64,000 bases of DNA from Bacillus subtilis subsp. subtilis str. 168 (GTDB taxonomy: Bacteria > Bacillota > Bacilli > Bacillales > Bacillaceae): the NCBI RefSeq assembly GCF_000009045.1, contig NC_000964.3, positions 682,001 to 746,000 on the forward strand, in the 5' to 3' direction. The notes under the pieces were generated by a model, which worked only from the letters and a program-made list of their open reading frames with translations, searched no databases and had not been told where the DNA came from. The position numbers and the translations under genes were made by a program. Shown piece after piece: positions 53,901 through 64,000 of the stretch. Position 1 is the first letter of the stretch. Each line of letters starts with the position of its first letter.

Positions 53901-54113
53901 CCGATCCTGATGACAGCCATTGCGACAATCGGCGCCTTGATTCCATTAGCCCTCGGCTTCGAAGGCGGAAGCCAGGTCATTTCAAAAGGACTCGGCGTAA
54001 CGGTTATCGGCGGTTTAATCAGTTCAACGCTTCTGACGCTCCTGATCGTGCCAATCGTATATGAAGTATTGGCGAAGTTCCGCAAGAAAAAACCGGGAAC
54101 GGAAGAAGAGTAA
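50955..54113 (+). CDS. swrC: RND (AcrB-like) efflux transporter, 1052 aa
   Basis: GRVVDDSIVVIENI, IGIVVTNAIVLID and RLRPILMT motifs; GGAGGA RBS. Confidence 0.93.
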   Translation: MNHVINFVLKNKFAVWLMTIIVTAAGLYAGMNMKQESIPDVNMPYLTISTTYPGATPSQVADEVTKPVEQAVQNLDGVSVVTSTSYENASSVMIEYDYEKDMDKAKTEAAEALENVNLPDDAKDPEISRYSLNSFPILTLSVSSDKDNLQELTKQVEDSLVSKLEGIEGVASVQVSGQQVEEVEFSFKEDKLKEYGLDEDTVKQVIQGSDVTTPLGLYTFGNEEKSVVVSGDIETIKDLKNMRIPTASASSAGSSAASQAGAQSAQAAQSAQAAAQVQQSASTAVPTVKLSDIATIKDVKKAESVSRTNGKDSIGINIVKANDANTVEVADDVKAELKKFKEDHKGFNYSATLDMAEPITQSVDTMLSKAIFGAIFAIVIILLFLRDIKSTLISVVSIPLSLLIALLVLQQLDITLNIMTLGAMTVAIGRVVDDSIVVIENIYRRMRLKDEPLRGKALVREATKEMFKPIMSSTIVTIAVFLPLALVGGQIGELFIPFALTIVFALAASLVISITLVPMLAHSLFKKSLTGAPIKAKEHKPGRLANIYKKVLNWALSHKWITSIIAVLMLLGSLFLVPLIGASYLPSEEEKTMQLTYSPEPGETKKEAENEAEKAEKILLDRKHVDTVQYSLGSGSPLAGGDSNGALFYIKYESDTPDFDKEKDNVLKEIQKQSDRGEWKSQDFSSSGNNNELTYYVYGDSENDIKDTVKDIEKIMKDEKDLKNVNSGLSSTYDEYTFVADQEKLSKLGLTASQISQALMSQTSQEPLTTVKKDGKELDVNIKTEKDEYKSVKDLENKKITSATGQEVKIGDVAKVKEGSTSDTVSKRDGKVYADVTGEVTSDNVTAVSAAIQKKIDKLDHPDNVSIDTGGVSADIADSFTKLGLAMLAAIAIVYLVLVITFGGALAPFAILFSLPFTVIGALVGLYVSGETISLNAMIGMLMLIGIVVTNAIVLIDRVIHKEAEGLSTREALLEAGSTRLRPILMTAIATIGALIPLALGFEGGSQVISKGLGVTVIGGLISSTLLTLLIVPIVYEVLAKFRKKKPGTEEE

Positions 54114-54120
54114 AAAACAA

Positions 54121-54145
54121 AAAGCCTCAGCTCTGCTGAGGCTTT
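54121..54145 (+). terminator. Hairpin after swrC, directly abutting repeat copy 2
   Basis: AAAGCCTCAGC-TCT-GCTGAGGCTTT; the T-run is cut short by the repeat start (CAG at 54146). Confidence 0.65.
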
Positions 54146-54320
54146 CAGCTTGTTGAAAAACCCTCGCATTCGTTGTCAGGTCTGCGCGTCGGTGCTCACG
54201 AATTCTACATTCGCTCCGCTCCAATGCTCCCCCTTCCTAGACTACAAGGGTTTTCAATCAAGCTGAAAGAATGTTAAGGATGACAAAAGCTCAAAACAAG
54301 AATCAGTTTTGAGCTTTTGT
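54146..54320 (+). repeat. Dispersed structured intergenic repeat, copy 2 (may extend to CTG at 54333)
   Basis: Shares AAACCCTCGCATTCGTTGTCAGGTCTGCGC...CCTTCCTAGACT.CAAGGGTTTTCAATCA.GCTG with copy 1; second hairpin ACAAAAGCTCAAAAC / GTTTTGAGCTTTTGT. Confidence 0.9.
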
Positions 54321-54435
54321 GCGTTTTCACCTGTAAGATTATGTACATTTTGTTGCGATTTTTTTAACTCATAGTATAATTAAAGGTTGTTAGTGTAAAA
54401 ATGGATCGGATACTCTTAAGTAGGATGATGAGATA

Positions 54436-55347
54436 ATGAAACGTGCACGCATAATATACAATCCGACTTCAGGACGGGAGATCTTTAAAAAGCATCTTGC
54501 CCAGGTCCTGCAAAAATTTGAACAAGCCGGCTATGAAACCTCCACCCATGCGACGACATGCGCAGGAGACGCTACACACGCTGCCAAGGAAGCGGCATTG
54601 CGTGAGTTTGACCTGATCATTGCGGCAGGCGGAGACGGAACGATCAACGAGGTCGTCAACGGGCTTGCGCCTTTAGACAATCGTCCGACACTCGGTGTGA
54701 TTCCTGTCGGCACAACGAACGACTTCGCCAGAGCGCTCGGAATCCCACGCGAGGATATTTTAAAAGCGGCAGATACGGTCATTAACGGCGTTGCCCGCCC
54801 GATTGATATCGGACAGGTCAACGGCCAGTATTTTATCAATATCGCCGGCGGAGGCCGTCTGACGGAGCTGACGTACGACGTGCCAAGCAAACTGAAAACA
54901 ATGCTCGGCCAGCTTGCTTATTATTTAAAAGGAATGGAAATGCTGCCTTCACTTCGTCCGACAGAAGTCGAGATTGAATATGACGGCAAGCTGTTTCAAG
55001 GTGAAATCATGCTGTTTTTGGTCACGCTGACAAACTCCGTCGGCGGGTTCGAAAAGCTCGCGCCGGATTCCAGCCTGAATGACGGCATGTTTGATTTGAT
55101 GATACTAAAGAAAGCAAACCTTGCTGAATTTATCAGGGTCGCCACGATGGCGCTTCGCGGAGAACACATCAACGACCAGCACATTATTTATACAAAAGCG
55201 AACCGCGTGAAAGTCAATGTATCAGAAAAGATGCAGCTGAACCTGGACGGCGAGTACGGCGGCATGCTGCCGGGCGAATTCGTGAATCTGTACCGGCACA
55301 TTCACGTCGTCATGCCGAAGGAGAAAGCGGAACAGTTGGATGACTAA
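54436..55347 (+). CDS. dgkB: Diacylglycerol kinase (YegS/DgkB family), 303 aa
   Basis: NPTSG, GGDGTINEV, PVGTTNDFAR and DGE motifs. Formerly yerQ. Confidence 0.93.
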   Translation: MKRARIIYNPTSGREIFKKHLAQVLQKFEQAGYETSTHATTCAGDATHAAKEAALREFDLIIAAGGDGTINEVVNGLAPLDNRPTLGVIPVGTTNDFARALGIPREDILKAADTVINGVARPIDIGQVNGQYFINIAGGGRLTELTYDVPSKLKTMLGQLAYYLKGMEMLPSLRPTEVEIEYDGKLFQGEIMLFLVTLTNSVGGFEKLAPDSSLNDGMFDLMILKKANLAEFIRVATMALRGEHINDQHIIYTKANRVKVNVSEKMQLNLDGEYGGMLPGEFVNLYRHIHVVMPKEKAEQLDD

Positions 55348-55370
55348 AACTTGGCTTGGTAAGCCAAGCT

Positions 55371-55545
55371 CAGAATGTTGACAAAATCCTAAAACAGTTT
55401 TCGTTTTAGGATTTTGTCATCTTTTCAGCGTGATTGAAAACCTTTGAAGTCTAGGAAGGGCGAGCATCGGAGCACAGCGAATGTTGAATTCGTGAGCACC
55501 GAAGCACAGGCCTGACAACGAATGCGAAGGTTTGCCTACACGCTG
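55371..55545 (-). repeat. Dispersed structured intergenic repeat, copy 3 (175 bp, inverted)
   Basis: Reverse complement aligns end-to-end with copy 1; flanked by imperfect direct repeats AAACTTGGCTTG...GCCAAG at 55347-55370 and 55546-55570. Confidence 0.92.
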
Positions 55546-55602
55546 AAACTTGGCTTGAATAGGCCAAGTTTTTCTTTCGCTTAAAACTAGAGGTGATTAT
55601 AG

Positions 55603-56982
55603 ATGAAAATGAAACCCCCAGTAGAAAAAAATGAATACTACGATGTGACATTTGAGGATTTGACACATGAAGGAGCGGGCGTCGCAAAGGTCCAAGGCTT
55701 CCCGATCTTTGTGCCGAATGCCCTACCCGAGGAAAAAGCCCAAATCAAAGTGACACGCGTCAAAAAAGGGTTCGCCTTCGGCCGCCTGATTGAGCTGAAG
55801 GAAGAAAGCCCGCATAGAACGGACGCCCCATGCCCGATTTACAAACAATGCGGAGGCTGCCAGCTTCAGCACATGACCTACGAAGGCCAGCTCCTGTTTA
55901 AACAGAAACAAGTCAAAGACGTCTTAGAACGCATCGGCAAGCTGGACCTTTCAAAAGTCACCGTGCACCCGACACTCGGCATGGAAGACCCGTGGAACTA
56001 CAGAAACAAAGCACAGGTGCCGGTAGGAGAACGGGAAGGCGGACTCGTCGCGGGATTCTATCAGCAAAGAAGCCATGACATCATCGACATGAGCGCCTGC
56101 CTGATCCAGCAATCCAAAAACGACGAAGCCGTTCAAGCTGTCAAAGACATTTGCGCAAACTACGGTGTCAAAGCCTACAACGAAGAACGCCACAAAGGCT
56201 GGCTCCGCCACATCATGGTCAGATACGGCGTTGTTACGGGCGAAATGATGATCGTCTTCATCACAAGAACAAGCGACTTCCCGCACAAAGCGAAGATCAT
56301 CGAAGACATCACAGCGCAATTCCCGCACGTCAAATCCATCGTGCAAAACATCAACCCAAACAAAACAAACGTCATTTTTGGCAACGAAACAAACGTCATC
56401 TGGGGCGAAGAATACATCTACGACCTCATCGGAGACGTCAAATTCGCCATCTCCGCCAGATCGTTTTATCAGGTCAACCCAGAGCAAACAAAAGTGCTCT
56501 ACGACAAAGCGCTTGAGTACGCTGAGCTTCAAGGGGAAGAAACCGTCATCGACGCTTACTGCGGCATCGGAACGATTTCTCTCTTCCTGGCAAAGCAGGC
56601 GAAAAAAGTGTACGGTGTAGAGATTGTGCCGGAAGCAATTGAGGACGCGAAGCGAAACGCCGAATTAAACGGCAACACAAACGCAGAGTTTGCTGTTGGA
56701 GAAGCGGAAACCGTGATTCCAAAGTGGTACGAAGAAGGCATTACAGCTGATACGCTGGTCGTCGACCCGCCAAGAAAAGGCTGCGACGAAGCCCTCCTGC
56801 GGACAATTGTGGAGATGAAGCCGAAGCGGGTAGTGTATGTGTCCTGTAATCCTGGCACGCTTGCGAGAGATTTGCGGGTGCTTGAGGATGGCGGGTACGT
56901 GACGCGCGAAGTGCAGCCTGTGGATATGTTTCCGCATACGAATCATGTGGAGTGCTGTGTGTTGATAAAATTAAAAGAATAA
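55603..56982 (+). CDS. rlmCD: 23S rRNA m5U methyltransferase (RumA/TrmA family), 459 aa
   Basis: TRAM domain, [10 protein letters not shown] Fe-S motif, SFYQVN, DAYCGIG, DPPRKG, YVSCNP and [10 protein letters not shown]. Formerly yefA. Confidence 0.94.
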
Positions 56983-56994
56983 ATAGTCAAAAAT

Positions 56995-57951
56995 CTATGC
57001 TGATGGAACTGTTGGTTCTCTAAAACGATAATTGATTTCAATGGTTCCATTTGCATGTACTTCTATTTCATCTACTAACAAATGAAGCATTTCGGGGGTA
57101 AGTGTACCTTCCTTCATGAATTTATCTAAGCTCTTTTTAAAATCAATTATTTCTTTTTCAATCTTTTGAAATTCTAGGTCCTTAGATAGTTGGTGAAGGG
57201 TAGTTTCAAAATTTGAAATATCTTCATTGGTGATATTTATGGCTAATTGGTAATCTTCTTTAGATATAACACCATTAGCAAGAGAGATAACTAAATTGGA
57301 TTTATCTCTCTTTTTATCGTTTAATTTTTCATTAATTTCGATTATCTTAGATTCGATTTTTTCTTTGTACTTTAACGCTTTTTCACTTAATTCTTTAAAA
57401 TAATTTTCCTTACTGAATTTCAAATATATCTTATTTAGGTTGGTTATTACTTTATCAGTTAAATCTATTTCACTTACGTAATGATCACTACATGCTTTTA
57501 AACCATGTTTATTATAACTTCCACAAACATAACCTTTTCGATTCTTTTTAAAATGCATTGACCTCCTGCAATCTTTGCAAACCGCAGTATTTGTAAAGAG
57601 ATGTACTTCAGCTTGAGGTCTCCTTCTTTTTCTAGTTATTAAAATCTCTTGTACAATAAGAAAGTCTTCTAAAGGTATGATTGGTTCGTGGCTTTTTTCA
57701 ATAATTATTTGGTTTTCTAGGTTAACTGACCTTCTTCTTTTACTGGTAACACTCGGTCTATATTCTCTACATTGTTGTAGTGTCCCAGTATAGTGAGGAT
57801 TTTCGAGAATTTTTCTTATTGAAGATCCGTGCCATTTGTCAGTAGCGTTCTTTTTGCGGGCAAGCTGCGAGGGACTAGTGACCCCTTCGTTATACAATCC
57901 CCTTGCTATTGCATCAAAGCCTTTTCCAGCAATATATTCTGAAAAGATTCT
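56995..57951 (-). pseudogene. yefB: Large serine recombinase, C-terminal part only (recombinase domain, zinc ribbon, coiled coil)
   Basis: [49 protein letters not shown] and YVCGSY...C motifs. No N-terminal catalytic Ser domain; recognisable homology stops at about 57951. Confidence 0.85.
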
Positions 57952-58213
57952 AATATTTACTATTTTCTCTGCGTTTGCTGAATTTGAGAGAGATATGATT
58001 GTAGAACGAACTCAAGAAGGTAAAATGTTGGCCAAGCAGAATCCGGATTTCCGAGAAGGAAGACCCAAAAAGTTCACAAAGCAGCAAATCAATCATGCAT
58101 TAACATTACTAGAAAATCATTCGTATAAACAAGTTGAAGATATGACTGGGATATCAGTTTCTACACTTGTAAGAGCTAAAAAGAAGAAAGCTGCTGAAGC
58201 TATAAATGGATAA
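57950..58213 (+). pseudogene. yefC: Small serine resolvase/invertase, C-terminal part only (helix E, hinge, HTH)
   Basis: [29 protein letters not shown] and [10 protein letters not shown] motifs. Upstream of about 57950 the frame is just the antisense of yefB, with no YARVS-type catalytic motif. Confidence 0.85.
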
Positions 58214-58287
58214 ATATTGTGAATTAATTATTCAATATCTTGAGAAATTTTTATAAAAGTAATCAAAAGTTTAATGGGGGAAACGAA

Positions 58288-60927
58288 ATGGCGCTCATTG
58301 ATTTAGAAGATAAAATTGCTGAAATAGTGAATCGAGAAGATCATTCAGATTTCTTGTATGAATTACTCGGTGTATATGATGTTCCACGAGCTACAATTAC
58401 GCGCTTGAAAAAAGGAAATCAAAACCTTACAAAACGGGTTGGTGAAGTACACTTAAAGAATAAGGTGTGGTTTAAGGAGGCTAAGAAAGGAAAGCTCTTT
58501 GACGCCCTTATTGATATAGAACAACAAGTTGAATATCTTTCAGCTAAGCCACGATATTTATTAGTTACTGACTATGATGGAGTATTAGCGAAAGATACAA
58601 AAACATTAGAGGCTCTTGATGTTAAATTTGAAGAACTTCCTCAGTATTTCGATTTCTTCCTTGCTTGGAAAGGTATTGAGAAAGTAGAGTTTGAAAAGGA
58701 AAACCCCGCTGATATTAAAGCAGCCGAACGTTTTGCACGGATATATGATGTACTTCGTAAAGAAAACAATATTATTGAGACTAATAGAGGGTTAGATTTA
58801 TTTCTTATTCGTTTACTGTTTTGTTTTTTCGCAGAAGATACTGACATCTTCAAACGAAATAGTTTTACGAATTTAATTAAGACTTTGACTGAAGAAGATG
58901 GTTCAAATCTAAATAAATTATTTGCTGATTTATTTATCGTGTTAGATAAAAATGAACGAGACGATGTTCCATCTTATTTAAAAGAGTTTCCGTATGTAAA
59001 TGGCCAGTTGTTTACTGAACCACATACAGAGTTGGAATTTTCTGCCAAATCCAGAAAGTTAATTATTGAGTGCGGTGAATTATTAAACTGGGCTAAAATC
59101 AATCCTGATATCTTTGGTTCAATGATTCAAGCTGTTGCTTCTGAAGAAAGCCGTAGTTATTTAGGTATGCACTACACAAGTGTCCCCAATATAATGAAGG
59201 TTATTAAACCGCTTTTCCTAGATAAACTTAATCAGTCTTTTTTAGATGCATACGATGATTATACAAAACTTGAAAATCTTCTAACACGAATCGGCAAAAT
59301 TAAATTCTTTGATCCTGCATGTGGTTCAGGGAACTTTTTGATTATTACCTACAAAGAATTACGGCGTATGGAAATCAATATTATAAAACGACTTCAAGAA
59401 CTCTTGGGAGAGTATCTTTATGTACCTTCAGTAACTTTATCTCAATTTTACGGAATAGAGATTGAAGATTTTGCACATGACGTTGCAAAATTATCACTTT
59501 GGATTGCTGAACATCAAATGAATGAAGAATTAAAAAATGAAGTTCATAATGCAGTACGCCCAACGTTACCACTTCATACAGCAGGGGATATTCGTTGTGC
59601 AAATGCTATTAGGGTTGAGTGGACTGAGGTTTGTCCCGCACAAGGATCTGAAGAAGTATATGTTTTTGGTAATCCACCGTATCTTGGTTCAAAAAAACAA
59701 AACAAAGAACATAAATCTGATATGTTATCAATTTTTGGAAAAGTCAAGAATGGTAAAATGCTTGATTATATTTCTGCTTGGTTTTACTTTGGTGCTAAAT
59801 ACGCTTCAACTACAAATGCAAAAGTTGCCTTTGTATCAACAAATTCAGTTACTCAAGGGGAACAGGTTTCTATCTTATGGAATGAGTTATTCAAGTTTGG
59901 AATTCAAATCAATTTTGCCTATAAATCTTTTAAATGGGCGAATAATGCTAAAAATAATGCTGCGGTAATTGTTGTGATTGTAGGTTTTGGCCCGTTAGAT
60001 ACCAAAGTAAACAAGTATTTATTTGTTGATGAAACGAAAAAGCTAGTTTCTAACATTAGTCCCTATTTAACTGATGGTGAAAATATTCTTGTTTCTTCTA
60101 GGACGAAGCCAATTTCAGACTTACCCAAACTGCATTTTGGGAACATGCCTAATGATGGCGGAGGATTACTCTTTACCATTACGGAATATACAGACGCAAT
60201 CAATAAGTATCCTGAATTAGTTCCCTATTTTAAAAAGTTTATAGGTTCAGTAGAGTTTATTAATGGTGGTTTACGGTATTGTTTATGGCTTAATGAAGCA
60301 AAATATGAAAAAATAAAGTCTAATCCTCTAATACAAGAAAGAATCTCAATTTCAAAAAATCACAGGGAAAAATCAACAGATAAAGGAACGAATAAACTTG
60401 CATTAACTCCGTGGAAGTTTAGAGATACTCATGAAACAACTAATTATTCCATTGTTGTTCCATCTGTGTCTTCTGAAAATAGATTTTATATTCCAATGGG
60501 ATTAGCAGGTGCAGATACAATTTTGTCAAATCTAATTTATGTAATTTACGATGCAGAAATTTACCTTCTAGGCATTTTGATGTCACGGATGCATATGACT
60601 TGGGTAAAAGCTGTAGCCGGAAGATTAAAAACTGACTATAGGTACTCTGCAGGTTTATGTTATAACACTTTCCCTATTCCTGAATTATCAACAAGAAGGA
60701 AGAATGAAATTGAAGAAGCAATTCTTGAAATTCTTGATCTTCGTGAAGAGCAGGGTGGTACATTAGCAGAGCTTTATAACCCTTCAACAATGCCAATTGA
60801 ATTAAAAGTAGCACATGAAAAGTTGGATGGAATTGTAGAAAGAGCGTATCGTCAAAAACAATTTGAATCTGATGAAGAACGCTTAGAAGTATTGCTTAAA
60901 TTGTATCAAGAAATGACAGAACGGTAG
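58288..60927 (+). CDS. dnmA: MmeI-like N6-adenine DNA methyltransferase, 879 aa (yeeA)
   Basis: Motif I FFDPACGSGNF (~59305-59337) precedes motif IV GNPPY (59668-59682), the gamma-class order. HYTS, RMHMTW and YNTFP resemble MmeI-family segments. GGGGG RBS before ATG 58288. Confidence 0.92.
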   Translation: MALIDLEDKIAEIVNREDHSDFLYELLGVYDVPRATITRLKKGNQNLTKRVGEVHLKNKVWFKEAKKGKLFDALIDIEQQVEYLSAKPRYLLVTDYDGVLAKDTKTLEALDVKFEELPQYFDFFLAWKGIEKVEFEKENPADIKAAERFARIYDVLRKENNIIETNRGLDLFLIRLLFCFFAEDTDIFKRNSFTNLIKTLTEEDGSNLNKLFADLFIVLDKNERDDVPSYLKEFPYVNGQLFTEPHTELEFSAKSRKLIIECGELLNWAKINPDIFGSMIQAVASEESRSYLGMHYTSVPNIMKVIKPLFLDKLNQSFLDAYDDYTKLENLLTRIGKIKFFDPACGSGNFLIITYKELRRMEINIIKRLQELLGEYLYVPSVTLSQFYGIEIEDFAHDVAKLSLWIAEHQMNEELKNEVHNAVRPTLPLHTAGDIRCANAIRVEWTEVCPAQGSEEVYVFGNPPYLGSKKQNKEHKSDMLSIFGKVKNGKMLDYISAWFYFGAKYASTTNAKVAFVSTNSVTQGEQVSILWNELFKFGIQINFAYKSFKWANNAKNNAAVIVVIVGFGPLDTKVNKYLFVDETKKLVSNISPYLTDGENILVSSRTKPISDLPKLHFGNMPNDGGGLLFTITEYTDAINKYPELVPYFKKFIGSVEFINGGLRYCLWLNEAKYEKIKSNPLIQERISISKNHREKSTDKGTNKLALTPWKFRDTHETTNYSIVVPSVSSENRFYIPMGLAGADTILSNLIYVIYDAEIYLLGILMSRMHMTWVKAVAGRLKTDYRYSAGLCYNTFPIPELSTRRKNEIEEAILEILDLREEQGGTLAELYNPSTMPIELKVAHEKLDGIVERAYRQKQFESDEERLEVLLKLYQEMTER

Positions 60928-60938
60928 GTGTAAGGTGT

Positions 60939-62738
60939 ATGGAAAATATAATTGAAATTAATTATAACCAAACTGGTAAAAGTAAGAAAACAAATGAATA
61001 CGGTATGCGTGAAATGCAGGCAAGAGCTTTTGAAAAACGTAACTCACAATATCTCTTAGTTAAAGCACCGCCAGCTTCTGGGAAATCTAGAGCTTTAATG
61101 TTTATCGGTTTGGATAAGCTCATAAATCAAGGTTTGAGGAAAGTGATTGTTGCTGTACCTGAACGCTCTATAGGTTCTTCATTTAAAAATACGGATTTAA
61201 AAAGTTATGGTTTCTTTGAAAATTGGAAAGTTGATCCTAGAAATAATTTAACTGTTGGCGGAGATAACTCTAAGGTTAAATCTTTTGTTCGTTTTATGGA
61301 ATCGGACGATCAGGTGTTAATATGTACGCACTCTACTTTGCGATTTGCGTTTGAAAAAATTGATGATAAAGCATTTGATAATTGTTTACTTGCAATAGAT
61401 GAATTTCACCATGTATCGGCAGATGTCAATTCTCGATTAGGTGAATTGTTAAGAAGTATTATTCATAATTCATCAGCACATATTGTAGCGATGACTGGGT
61501 CGTATTTCCGTGGAGATTCTGTACCAATTTTATTACCAGAAGATGAGGAATTATTTGACAAGGTAACTTATTCCTATTATGAACAACTTGATGGATATGA
61601 ATATCTAAAGGGATTTGGTATAGGATATCACTTCTATCAAGGCCAGTACACATCAGCTATTAATGAAGTATTGGATACAAATAAGAAAACAATCGTTCAT
61701 ATTCCAAATGTAAACTCAGGGGAATCGACAAAGGATAAGTACGATGAAGTTGGTAAGATACTTGATATGATTGGTGAAGTTGAATATCAAGATGATGATA
61801 CTGGAATTATTTATGTTAAGCGACATTCTGACGGTAAAACATTGAAAATTGCAGATTTAGTAGATGACCAAGTTGGAAGAGAAAATGTCGTTGCGTATTT
61901 GCGTAATATTGAAGCCCTAGACGATTTAGATATAATTATTGCTCTTGGTATGGCGAAAGAGGGCTTTGACTGGCCGTTTTGTGAACATACTTTGACAGTT
62001 GGTTATCGTGGCTCACTTACAGAAATAGTACAAATAATTGGGCGCTGTACACGTGATAGTTACAATAAAACCTATGCTCAATTTACCAACCTAATCGCAA
62101 TGCCTGATGCAAAGGATGAAGTAGTGACTTATACAGTGAATACAATGCTTAAAGCTATTTCTGCCTCACTTTTGATGGAGCAGGTCCTTACACCTGACTT
62201 TAAATTTAAACGTAGAAGAAATGAAAGTGAAAAATCTTCTACTACAGGAGAATTATTCGTTAAGGGATTGAAAGAACCATCAACAGAAAATGTCAAAAAG
62301 ATTATTGAAAATGATATTAATGATTTAAAAGCAAAAATCATGCAAGATTCACAAGTCCAAAAAACATTTAGTGGAGAAGTAGATCCCAAAGTATTGAACA
62401 AAGTGTTGATTCCGAAAGTTATTCAAAAAGTATATCCAAATTTATCAGATGAGGAAATTGAGGAAGTTAGACAGCACGTTGTTCTAGATACAGTTATGAA
62501 AGGTGCTAAGTCTGAAGTTGTAGGAAGTAAAGAATTTATAAGAATGGCAGATAAGTTTATAAACATTGAGGATTTAGATATCAATCTGATTGATTCCATC
62601 AATCCGTTCCAAAAAGCATTTGAGGTTCTATCGAAAGAATTGAACTCACCAGTGCTAAAACTGATTCAGGAAACTATTGATGCAAAACGTATTAATTTTG
62701 ATGAAGATGAACTAGTATTCATATGGCCAAAGGTTTAG
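60939..62738 (+). CDS. yeeB: SF2 (DExH) helicase/ATPase, 599 aa, probably C-terminally truncated
   Basis: APPASGKS, IDEFHH, AMTGS, MAKEGFDWP and QIIGRCTR motifs; 11 bp after dnmA; ends at TAG 62736-62738. Confidence 0.9.
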   Translation: MENIIEINYNQTGKSKKTNEYGMREMQARAFEKRNSQYLLVKAPPASGKSRALMFIGLDKLINQGLRKVIVAVPERSIGSSFKNTDLKSYGFFENWKVDPRNNLTVGGDNSKVKSFVRFMESDDQVLICTHSTLRFAFEKIDDKAFDNCLLAIDEFHHVSADVNSRLGELLRSIIHNSSAHIVAMTGSYFRGDSVPILLPEDEELFDKVTYSYYEQLDGYEYLKGFGIGYHFYQGQYTSAINEVLDTNKKTIVHIPNVNSGESTKDKYDEVGKILDMIGEVEYQDDDTGIIYVKRHSDGKTLKIADLVDDQVGRENVVAYLRNIEALDDLDIIIALGMAKEGFDWPFCEHTLTVGYRGSLTEIVQIIGRCTRDSYNKTYAQFTNLIAMPDAKDEVVTYTVNTMLKAISASLLMEQVLTPDFKFKRRRNESEKSSTTGELFVKGLKEPSTENVKKIIENDINDLKAKIMQDSQVQKTFSGEVDPKVLNKVLIPKVIQKVYPNLSDEEIEEVRQHVVLDTVMKGAKSEVVGSKEFIRMADKFINIEDLDINLIDSINPFQKAFEVLSKELNSPVLKLIQETIDAKRINFDEDELVFIWPKV

Positions 62739-62861
62739 GAATTTTATCGTTCAACTGGTAGAAGACCTGATTCAAAATCTGAAGACCCACTTGAAAGGCG
62801 TATGGGTGAAGCTGTATTATACATGCAAGAGCTTAGGAGGAAACGTGAAAATGGCAAGTAA
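62739..62861 (+). pseudogene. In-frame continuation of yeeB beyond the TAG (40 codons, then TAA)
   Basis: Hand translation: EFYRSTGRRPDSKSEDPLERRMGEAVLYMQELRRKRENGK*. The TAA (62859-62861) overlaps the yeeC start region. Confidence 0.8.
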
Positions 62862-63999
62862 TAGATACCATTCTATTAATGAAATCATGGAAAGTCAGCT
62901 GTTTTACCAAATCACAACACCACCTAAGAAAACACAAAAAGCCCAGTATGATCCTGAAGTTGAAAAGTTTTTGGAGATTATTGAATTCGTCAAAGAAAAT
63001 GGGCGAGAACCCCAAAAAGTCCCTACTGATTTAACTGAAAGAAGTTTAGCAAGTCGATTAATTGGGATTCGGAAAGATCCTGATCGTATGGAATATTTGA
63101 AAGAGTATGATGAAATTGGATTACTTGAAGTAAGATCGAAGGAACTAACAATTCCTAAAATTTCTTCAATTGATGATATTCTAAAAAGTGGCTTATCTGC
63201 ATTATTAGGTGATAATTTAAATAATGATATAACTAGGTCAATTTTTGATACAAGTTCACTTCAAAAGGTTACGACAATGCCTGAATACGTTGCAAAGCGT
63301 AAAAAAATAAAAGATTTTGGAAAGTTTGAAGAGCTATTCAAGAAGTGCCACAAGGAAATTACAGAGGGTAAACGAAAAATTTTAACTTTCAAAAATGAAC
63401 AAGACATACAGTCAAATAGTTTTTATATATTAAAAGGAGTTCTTCTTTATGTTGAAGATGTGGGAGAACGTAAAAAAGCAAAGGGAAAAACCAATGCTAG
63501 ACTTCGATGTATATTTGAAAATGGAACGGAATCAGATATGTTACTACGTTCCTTATCAGCGGAGTTATATAAACATGGTAGACGTGTGACCGACAATGAA
63601 GATACATTGTTGGATAATGTTAGAGAAGATGATGTTTCGACTGGCTTTATTTACGTACTAAAATCTTTGAGTACAGATCCGCAAATTAGTTCCATTAAGA
63701 ATTTATATAAGATCGGTTTTACAACTGGTTCAGTAGAAAATAGAATCAGGAATGCAGAAAATCAATCAACTTATCTTTATGCTCCAGTAGAAATTGTAAC
63801 CACATATCAAGTGTTCAATATGAATGCTAGCAAATTTGAGACGGCAATCCATCATGCGCTAGCAAATAATAATTTGGATGTTTCTATTTTGGGGGCAAAT
63901 GGAAAGATGTTAGTTCCTAAAGAGTGGTTCGTTGTCACACTTGAAGATTTACAAGCTGTAATAGATGAGATTGTGATGATGGTTCATCTTTATGACTAA
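62851..63999 (+). CDS. yeeC: Protein with a C-terminal T5orf172/GIY-YIG-like nuclease domain, 382 aa
   Basis: AGGAGG (62835-62840) precedes ATG 62851; GFIYVLKS...LYKIGFTTGSVENRI...FETAIH motif. The ORF-track start at 62791 is too early. Confidence 0.88.
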   Translation: MASNRYHSINEIMESQLFYQITTPPKKTQKAQYDPEVEKFLEIIEFVKENGREPQKVPTDLTERSLASRLIGIRKDPDRMEYLKEYDEIGLLEVRSKELTIPKISSIDDILKSGLSALLGDNLNNDITRSIFDTSSLQKVTTMPEYVAKRKKIKDFGKFEELFKKCHKEITEGKRKILTFKNEQDIQSNSFYILKGVLLYVEDVGERKKAKGKTNARLRCIFENGTESDMLLRSLSAELYKHGRRVTDNEDTLLDNVREDDVSTGFIYVLKSLSTDPQISSIKNLYKIGFTTGSVENRIRNAENQSTYLYAPVEIVTTYQVFNMNASKFETAIHHALANNNLDVSILGANGKMLVPKEWFVVTLEDLQAVIDEIVMMVHLYD

Positions 64000-64000
64000 A

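Follow-up and report, generated by a model that had tools for sequence, protein, structure and literature searches.

Homologues of the restriction-modification (RM) enzyme MmeI, a Type IIL/IIG protein that cuts DNA with its own N-terminal PD-ExK nuclease (D70, E80 and K82) and needs neither ATP nor a partner, fall into two groups, with and without the PD-ExK motif (Morgan et al. 2009, PMC2731913; NAR 37:5208). In the group without it, typified by YeeA, that work described a YeeB-like helicase and a YeeC-like GIY-YIG protein as flanking the gene ‘invariably’. It was proposed that the MmeI-like subunit provides specificity and one-strand modification while helicase and nuclease perform the scission, ‘similar to type I’ systems; YeeA alone did not cleave DNA (PMC2731913). 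Here we analyse this trio of genes in a stretch of 64,000 nucleotides (nt) of Bacillus subtilis subsp. subtilis str. 168 (assembly GCF_000009045.1, contig NC_000964.3, positions 682,001 to 746,000 of the forward strand), which we call the window and whose numbering we use throughout. The genes dnmA (yeeA), yeeB and yeeC lie at its end, from 58288 to 63999.

YeeA, since renamed DnmA, makes GACG(m6A)G and requires Y465 to do so, and the unmethylated plasmid pHP13 with its three sites was found to transform the wild type and a dnmA deletion equally well (Nye et al. 2020, PMC7261158). Fernandez et al. (2023, PMC9973331) tabulated the synteny of the trio as conserved, observed that deletions of yeeB and yeeC left the susceptibility to phages Nf, phi29 and SBS-PhiJ unchanged and called the locus a non-functional relic. 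According to the same paper GACGAG is not avoided in Bacillus phages, one of the three test phages has no such site and another has three, and the phages were propagated on PY79, a wild-type dnmA+ strain. A yeeAB homologue of Vibrio crassostreae protects against one phage subclade, and inactivation of either yeeA or yeeB abolishes this protection (Piel et al. preprint; PMC9973331). We found no later named defence system covering the trio in a literature search, and PADLOC reported no named system spanning it.

The trio, its proposed mechanism and its synteny are therefore already known, and the locus studied here is that of the 2009, 2020 and 2023 papers, with no difference in kind. A sequence-only reading of the window had treated the joint role of the three proteins as an open question, for which Morgan 2009 (PMC2731913) had already proposed a model. 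The domain assignments of that reading hold. The division of labour which it put forward, with the methyltransferase giving specificity, YeeB acting as motor and YeeC cutting, fits the co-occurrence and the shuffling of recognition domains reported below but is the published one; its statement that the methyltransferase activity of DnmA is published was correct. What we add is modest: a nonsense codon in yeeB with a readable remnant behind it, a residue-level map of the dead nuclease domain of DnmA, a motif shared by the YeeB tail and YeeC, a pattern of co-variation, and a caveat on the phage assays. We consider it probable that the locus is a dnmA(yeeA)-yeeB-yeeC operon within a decayed, horizontally acquired AT-rich island, that the trio family is a widespread, often plasmid-borne ATP-dependent RM system resembling Type I and Type ISP enzymes, and that in B. 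subtilis its restriction arm is disabled while DnmA persists as a functional orphan methylase.

Open reading frames (ORFs), Pfam matches and base composition bore out the AT-rich island with three co-oriented genes that the sequence-only reading had described, and all the motifs it quoted are present where it placed them. GC content is about 0.33 over the last ~7 kilobases (kb) of the window against 0.45-0.50 upstream, with the break near 56990, directly past an rlmCD-like gene. The three genes are consecutive on the + strand. dnmA runs from an ATG at 58288 to 60927 (879 amino acids (aa); a longer ORF with a TTG start begins at 58240) and is separated by 11 nt from yeeB (60939-62738, 599 aa), and yeeC runs from an ATG at 62851 to 63999 (382 aa; a longer TTG-started ORF begins at 62791). 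The family traits are thus largely in place, namely a methyltransferase without PD-ExK, a co-oriented superfamily 2 (SF2) helicase and a T5orf172/GIY-YIG protein directly after it. The trait that the B. subtilis copy lacks is a full-length YeeB with its tail and with a stop codon overlapping the yeeC start.

DnmA is an MmeI-type, gamma-class N6-adenine methyltransferase with its own target recognition domain (TRD). It matches all five MmeI Pfam domains (PF20464, PF20465, PF20473, PF20466 and PF20467), each above its cut-off, with E-values of 3e-102 for MmeI_Mtase, 2e-76 for MmeI_TRD and 1e-21 for MmeI_N. PADLOC assigns it to REase_MTase_IIG (Type IIG) with 1165 bits, and it aligns over its full length with the MmeI structure 5HR4 (E 3e-185). 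Motif I, DPACGSG, which binds S-adenosylmethionine, is found at residues 342-348 (59311-59331), the catalytic motif IV, NPPY, whose tyrosine is the Y465 mentioned above, at residues 462-465 (59671-59682), and the TRD at residues 596-800 (60073-60687). The matches to the models of PglX, from bacteriophage exclusion (BREX) systems, and of DrmMI, from the defence island system associated with restriction-modification (DISARM), are weak only.

The N-terminal domain of DnmA (58288-58761) is where it parts from MmeI. A profile built from 35 DnmA-type N-termini matches MmeI residues 27-205 with an E-value of 2.6e-19, and for that reason the domain is, as judged from sequence, a homologue of the MmeI nuclease domain and not a foreign replacement. 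In the profile alignment MmeI E51 corresponds to K41 of DnmA, D70 to E53, E80 to K63 and K82 to A65, the identities of the MmeI catalytic residues having been checked against Morgan 2009 (PMC2731913). Across 66 family members position 53 is E, D or Q, position 63 is K, R or Q in 64 of them, and position 65 is variable; at the positions aligned with D70, E80 and K82, by which that paper defined PD-ExK, DnmA therefore does not carry the motif. The sequence-only reading had pointed to an ExK with His in place of Asp in GEVHLKNKVWFKEAK (58441-58485). Those letters are literally there, but they lie one to two residues out of the MmeI register and are unconserved: H55 occurs in 8, E64 in 32 and K66 in 13 of the 66 members, and their alignment with D70, E80 and K82 was rejected both by the profile alignment and by these column counts. 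The conclusion that the domain is predicted to be unable to cut stands, on residues other than those first named.

Some further positions in DnmA stand out. Within the N-domain all 66 members have R89 and D103 and either K or R at position 105, and position 95 is D or N (nearly invariant); the aspartates D95 and D103 are also found in MmeI. DnmA differs from its family at 3 of 181 conserved columns. One of the three lies in the helical spacer domain, where DnmA has an asparagine, N207 (58906-58908), and 65 of 65 orthologues as well as MmeI (EDGSDL) have aspartate.

The main departure from the family lies in yeeB and had been missed by the sequence-only reading. YeeB is an SF2 DExH ATPase, a putative translocase, with the motifs APPASGKS (Walker A, 61065-61088), DEFHH (61398-61412), MTGS (61491-61502), AKEGFDW (61953-61973) and QIIGR (62031-62045). 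Its Pfam matches are to DEAD/ResIII and Helicase_C only, with no nuclease domain among them. Its sequence gives marginal matches to solved structures of the RIG-I-like kind, and PADLOC weak ones to PbeA and Cas3; NCBIfam holds no model for YeeB or YeeC. A Foldseek search with the YeeB model returned generic SF2 proteins, HsdR among the best and LlaBIII among many others, so that it is not discriminating. The B. subtilis protein is 599 aa long, compared with 637-656 aa in 79 of 79 orthologues. An in-frame TAG at codon 600 (62736-62738), in place of the GAA or GAG of the five closest orthologues, removes a 42-residue C-terminal tail that all 79 retain. In orthologues this tail follows ‘...WPKV’ and reads F-x5-G-R/K-x-P-x3-S-x-D-P-x-E-R-R-M-A-E-A-x-I-Y-L-K-x2-K-R-K. 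None of the papers that we consulted mentions this stop codon.

Downstream of the TAG the frame of yeeB continues for 40 untranslated codons, EFYRSTGRRPDSKSEDPLERRMGEAVLYMQELRRKRENGK, to a TAA at 62859-62861 (the remnant thus spans 62739-62861), which overlaps the yeeC ATG at 62851 by 11 nt. Four residues of the tail are shared by 95% or more of the orthologues, and all of them are still encoded there; on this sequence evidence the 112 nt that separate yeeB from yeeC are the readable remnant of the yeeB 3' end and not a spacer. In most loci of the family the end of yeeB and the start of yeeC share 1-23 nt; this overlap implies translational coupling of the two genes, which the B. subtilis copy has lost. 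The exact 599-aa product is found on at least 1000 public contigs, and hits with 100% identity bear B. subtilis names. A search of JGI metagenomes for a sense-codon version of the B. subtilis-type yeeB gave no match at all and is uninformative.

The tail itself appears to be a structured element. For an intact orthologue AlphaFold predicts it with confidence as a helix (590-607), a loop and a second helix (618-638), and the position of the stop falls within the first of these helices. Comparison with hhalign showed the tail to be homologous to an N-terminal motif of YeeC (aa 34-75, 62950-63075), with a probability of 90.5% and an E-value of 1.4e-6. In the YeeC model this motif is likewise a helix-loop-helix (helices 35-50 and 61-75), well modelled and among the best-conserved parts of the protein. 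Both motifs may bind the same partner, or one another.

YeeC is the candidate nuclease of the trio. It consists of three modules, an N-terminal helical module, a beta-rich middle domain and a C-terminal domain of the T5orf172/GIY-YIG superfamily that Pfam places in the last ~100 residues (63643-63999; MUG113 5e-16, T5orf172 1e-14). GFIY (63643-63654), YKIG (63706-63717) and EWF (63922-63930) mark this last domain. In our alignment of orthologues (A3) G265, Y268, K287, G289, R298, E330 and E358-W-F are invariant and all are present in the B. subtilis protein, which deviates at 0 of 51 highly conserved columns; the putative GIY-YIG catalytic residues Y268, Y286, R298 and E358 are conserved, with Y or F at position 286. 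Its AlphaFold2 model has a predicted local distance difference test score (pLDDT) of 79.9. A search of the YeeC sequence against solved structures gave no match, and PADLOC gave a weak one to PDC-S57.

Several other properties of YeeC may be recorded here. The middle domain (aa ~177-246, 63380-63590), with the highly conserved stretch …NARLRCIFENGTES-MLLRSL…, has no Pfam family; it is modelled as a small beta-barrel and Foldseek returned weak SH3/Tudor/eIF5A-like matches only. An acidic motif, (S)IDDIL-DD-LGLL, is found in two copies in most orthologues, at the extreme N-terminus and at aa ~106-120, in linkers predicted to be disordered, and the N-terminal copy is degenerate in the Bacillus clade (62851-63200 region of the window). 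The short C-terminus of YeeC was considered as a possible B. subtilis defect and discarded, as it is common to the whole Bacillales clade, loci with intact yeeB included.

We placed the locus in its family by scanning one genome per species with the YeeB alignment, which yielded 556 confirmed relatives, of which the best 80 loci were kept. These come from Bacillota, Bacteroidota, Alpha-, Beta-, Gamma- and Deltaproteobacteria, Campylobacterota, Lentisphaerae and others, with YeeB identities of 63-68% across phyla. The genes co-occur: YeeC lies directly downstream of YeeB in 79 of the 80 loci, the exception being a locus cut by a contig end, and a DnmA-type methyltransferase is co-oriented upstream in 72 and found downstream of YeeC in one (L068). 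The remaining seven, with no methyltransferase found, each have less than 2.4 kb of upstream sequence. Homologues of YeeB are carried by 234 plasmids, 119 of them conjugative, and by hardly any phages.

The three proteins co-vary in part. Among 1830 pairs from 61 loci, compared by Spearman correlation as a description since the pairs are non-independent, the identity of the DnmA N-domain tracks that of YeeB (rho 0.86) and of YeeC (rho 0.67), whereas TRD identity is nearly uncorrelated with either (rho 0.15 and 0.11). The TRD is also the most divergent domain of DnmA, at a mean of 41% identity, and in the closest relatives, whose YeeB is 92% identical, the N-domain is 85% and the TRD only 53-56% identical. 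Because the TRD is uncoupled from YeeB whereas the N-domain follows it, the pattern is that expected of RM-like evolution, in which specificity would be shuffled while the part presumed to contact the motor co-evolves with it.

These features allow a comparison with neighbouring systems. MmeI resembles DnmA in its architecture of five domains (N, helical spacer, methyltransferase, TRD and C), gamma-class N6-adenine motifs, contiguous asymmetric site and one-strand modification; it differs in cutting by itself, where DnmA has E53, K63 and A65 and showed no cleavage (Morgan 2009). The Type ISP enzymes LlaGI and LlaBIII combine, as the trio seems to, a nuclease, an SF2 motor, a gamma N6-adenine methylase and a TRD with an asymmetric site modified on one strand, and the trio would further share with them a requirement for two sites and translocation driven by ATP. 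Type ISP enzymes differ in being single polypeptides with an Mrr/PD-ExK nuclease, while the trio comprises three proteins with a nuclease candidate of the GIY-YIG superfamily. Type I systems (HsdM/HsdS/HsdR, for example EcoR124I) are similar in their several subunits, in a motor whose targeting depends on the methylase, as that of YeeB would, and in HsdR being among the best fold matches of YeeB. In contrast to them the trio has no separate S subunit, its TRD being fused to the methyltransferase, its site is not bipartite, its motor bears no fused PD-ExK domain and modification is on one strand. The kinds of passenger genes described below are another likeness to Type I. PglX of BREX and DrmMI of DISARM contain related MmeI-like methyltransferase/TRD modules, but none of the other core genes of those systems is found at the trio and DnmA scores far below the family cut-offs.

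On this basis the system may work as follows. With its own TRD the MmeI-type subunit reads an asymmetric site, one strand of which it methylates, as shown for DnmA and GACGAG. When bound to an unmodified site it would recruit or license YeeB through its dead nuclease-like N-domain, which would thus couple modification to the motor. YeeB would then translocate DNA by ATP hydrolysis, and YeeC would supply the nuclease through its T5orf172/GIY-YIG domain. Since the complementary strand, CTCGTC, has no adenine, one daughter duplex is left unmarked at each site after replication. To spare self DNA the system would therefore probably act only where two unmodified sites stand in a defined orientation, as Type III, Type ISP and MmeI enzymes do. 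In B. subtilis the TAG at codon 600 would strip YeeB of its tail, uncouple yeeB from yeeC and leave the restriction arm off. The truncation may explain why no restriction by the trio is seen in this organism, and the B. subtilis copy is most likely a relic, disabled for restriction but with its orphan methylase active.

Several points weigh against this account. Translocation by YeeB and cleavage by YeeC are predicted activities in every family member, the need for the YeeB tail is deduced from its conservation, and the YeeC model has no Foldseek match in the PDB at E <= 1e-3, solved GIY-YIG nucleases included, yet its candidate residues are conserved and its Pfam matches are to T5orf172 and MUG113. 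T5orf172 is also read, and was originally described, as a DNA-binding domain (PMC9973331). The truncated YeeB core deviates at 0 of 246 highly conserved columns and yeeC keeps an AGGAGG ribosome-binding site of its own; the shortened motor may still work, or may have been broken only a short time ago. Indeed the lesion looks recent, or the remainder of the locus still under selection, because the tail residues of the remnant and the conserved columns of the YeeB core and YeeC are intact. Nor do the published phage tests count for either side. As the phages were grown on dnmA+ PY79 their GACGAG sites were probably already methylated, and such an assay is blind to modification-sensitive restriction, be yeeB intact or not. 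Transformation with plasmid remains sound evidence that the locus is inactive, although natural competence is not an ideal way to make this test.

Three other explanations are possible but less likely. Should the trio still be a working defence in B. subtilis despite its short YeeB, the negative results would come from the design of the assays and from narrow specificity. The intact conserved columns of the YeeB core and of YeeC, the probable pre-modification of the test phages and the scarcity of sites in them (none in one, three in another) would fit, as would the fact that the Vibrio homologue protects against a single phage subclade only and the repression of the cluster by GerR, through which expression may be conditional. 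This is nevertheless unlikely, as unmethylated pHP13 with its three sites enters the wild type as well as the deletion, the tail kept by 79 of 79 orthologues with four residues at 95% or more argues that it is needed, and GACGAG is avoided neither in Bacillus phages nor in the window, which contains 21 sites where shuffled sequences predict 23.5 +/- 5.1; none of the 21 lies within the island. More doubtful is a BREX-like exclusion without cleavage, where a PglX-like methylase marks self DNA and YeeB and YeeC block the replication of unmodified DNA, with YeeC as a DNA binder and not a nuclease. The original description of T5orf172 and the lack of a structural match for YeeC are in keeping with it, and so are the weak matches of DnmA to PglX and DrmMI. 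However, no PglZ, BrxC or BrxL is present in the window or conserved beside the trio in the 80 loci, the PglX score of 31 bits compares with an NCBIfam cut-off of 900, and YeeC keeps the GIY-YIG active-site residues (invariant Y268, R298 and E358, with Y or F at 286).

We give the least credit, and little at that, to YeeB and YeeC forming an autonomous, methylation-independent module of a Type IV-like or abortive-infection kind, with a co-travelling methyltransferase that is regulatory or anti-restriction. Passenger genes do part the methyltransferase from YeeB by up to 7.6 kb, it lies downstream of YeeC in L068, and yeeB and yeeC with their overlapping stop and start are the tighter pair. Set against this, virtually no locus with sufficient flanking sequence lacks the methyltransferase, the N-domain of this enzyme follows YeeB with the rho of 0.86 given above, the family-wide loss of nuclease residues in that domain makes sense only with cleavage in trans, and inactivation of either yeeA or yeeB abolished protection in Vibrio. 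An ATP-dependent RM system whose restriction arm is disabled in B. subtilis remains our preferred explanation.

The border of the island bears traces of mobility. Where the GC drop begins, a yefB-like gene on the - strand (56995-57897, 300 aa) encodes a fragment of a large serine recombinase with Recombinase, Zn_ribbon_recom and DUF4368 matches and no resolvase catalytic domain in the Pfam scan. A yefC-like gene on the + strand (57836-58213, 125 aa) encodes a small resolvase/invertase fragment that matches only positions 112-142 of the Resolvase profile, the last ~30 residues of that domain, plus HTH_7. The 5' ends of the two fragments overlap (57836-57897), which suggests that a mobile element has decayed here and that its junction is rearranged. 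Neither an Rfam nor a tRNA scan of 54000-64000 gave a hit, and promoter and terminator scans gave no signal above shuffled expectation.

In other genomes the operon often carries additional genes. The gap between methyltransferase and helicase is at most 203 nt in 41 of the 72 loci, and in the other 31 (among L008-L080) 0.6-7.6 kb of co-oriented passenger genes lie between them. Schlafen/AlbA_2-HATPase_c_4 proteins (13 ORFs or fragments), RhuM (6), YhcG/DUF1016 (3), Fic (3), Bro-N and an AAA_13 ATPase recur there. Cargo of the RhuM, Fic, YhcG, AlbA_2-HATPase and AAA_13 types is typical of Type I RM operons. On the conjugative plasmid pG32-177 of Proteus terrae (L081, 3737-8141) the MmeI-type gene is cut by IS26 and adjoins sul3, and the annotation divides YeeC into an N-terminal ORF of 95 aa and another for a GIY-YIG protein of 304 aa.

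From the point of view of RM biology the trio could, tentatively, represent a mechanistically distinct class, in which MmeI-type one-strand modification is combined with a separate SF2 motor and a GIY-YIG-superfamily nuclease, held together by a dead nuclease domain and a shared helix-loop-helix, and which is silent in the B. subtilis laboratory lineage solely through the yeeB nonsense codon. If our hypothesis were correct, restoring a sense codon at position 600 or supplying an intact orthologue would reveal restriction of phage grown without dnmA. The label of relic comes from an organism whose helicase is truncated by a stop codon and from phage assays that used a modifying host, and for both reasons the negative result in B. 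subtilis says little about the family. Relatives of the trio are very widespread, with at least 556 genome stretches and 234 plasmids carrying them, and it is their biochemistry that is at stake; the hypothesis put forward in 2009 is now made cheaply testable in a harmless laboratory strain.

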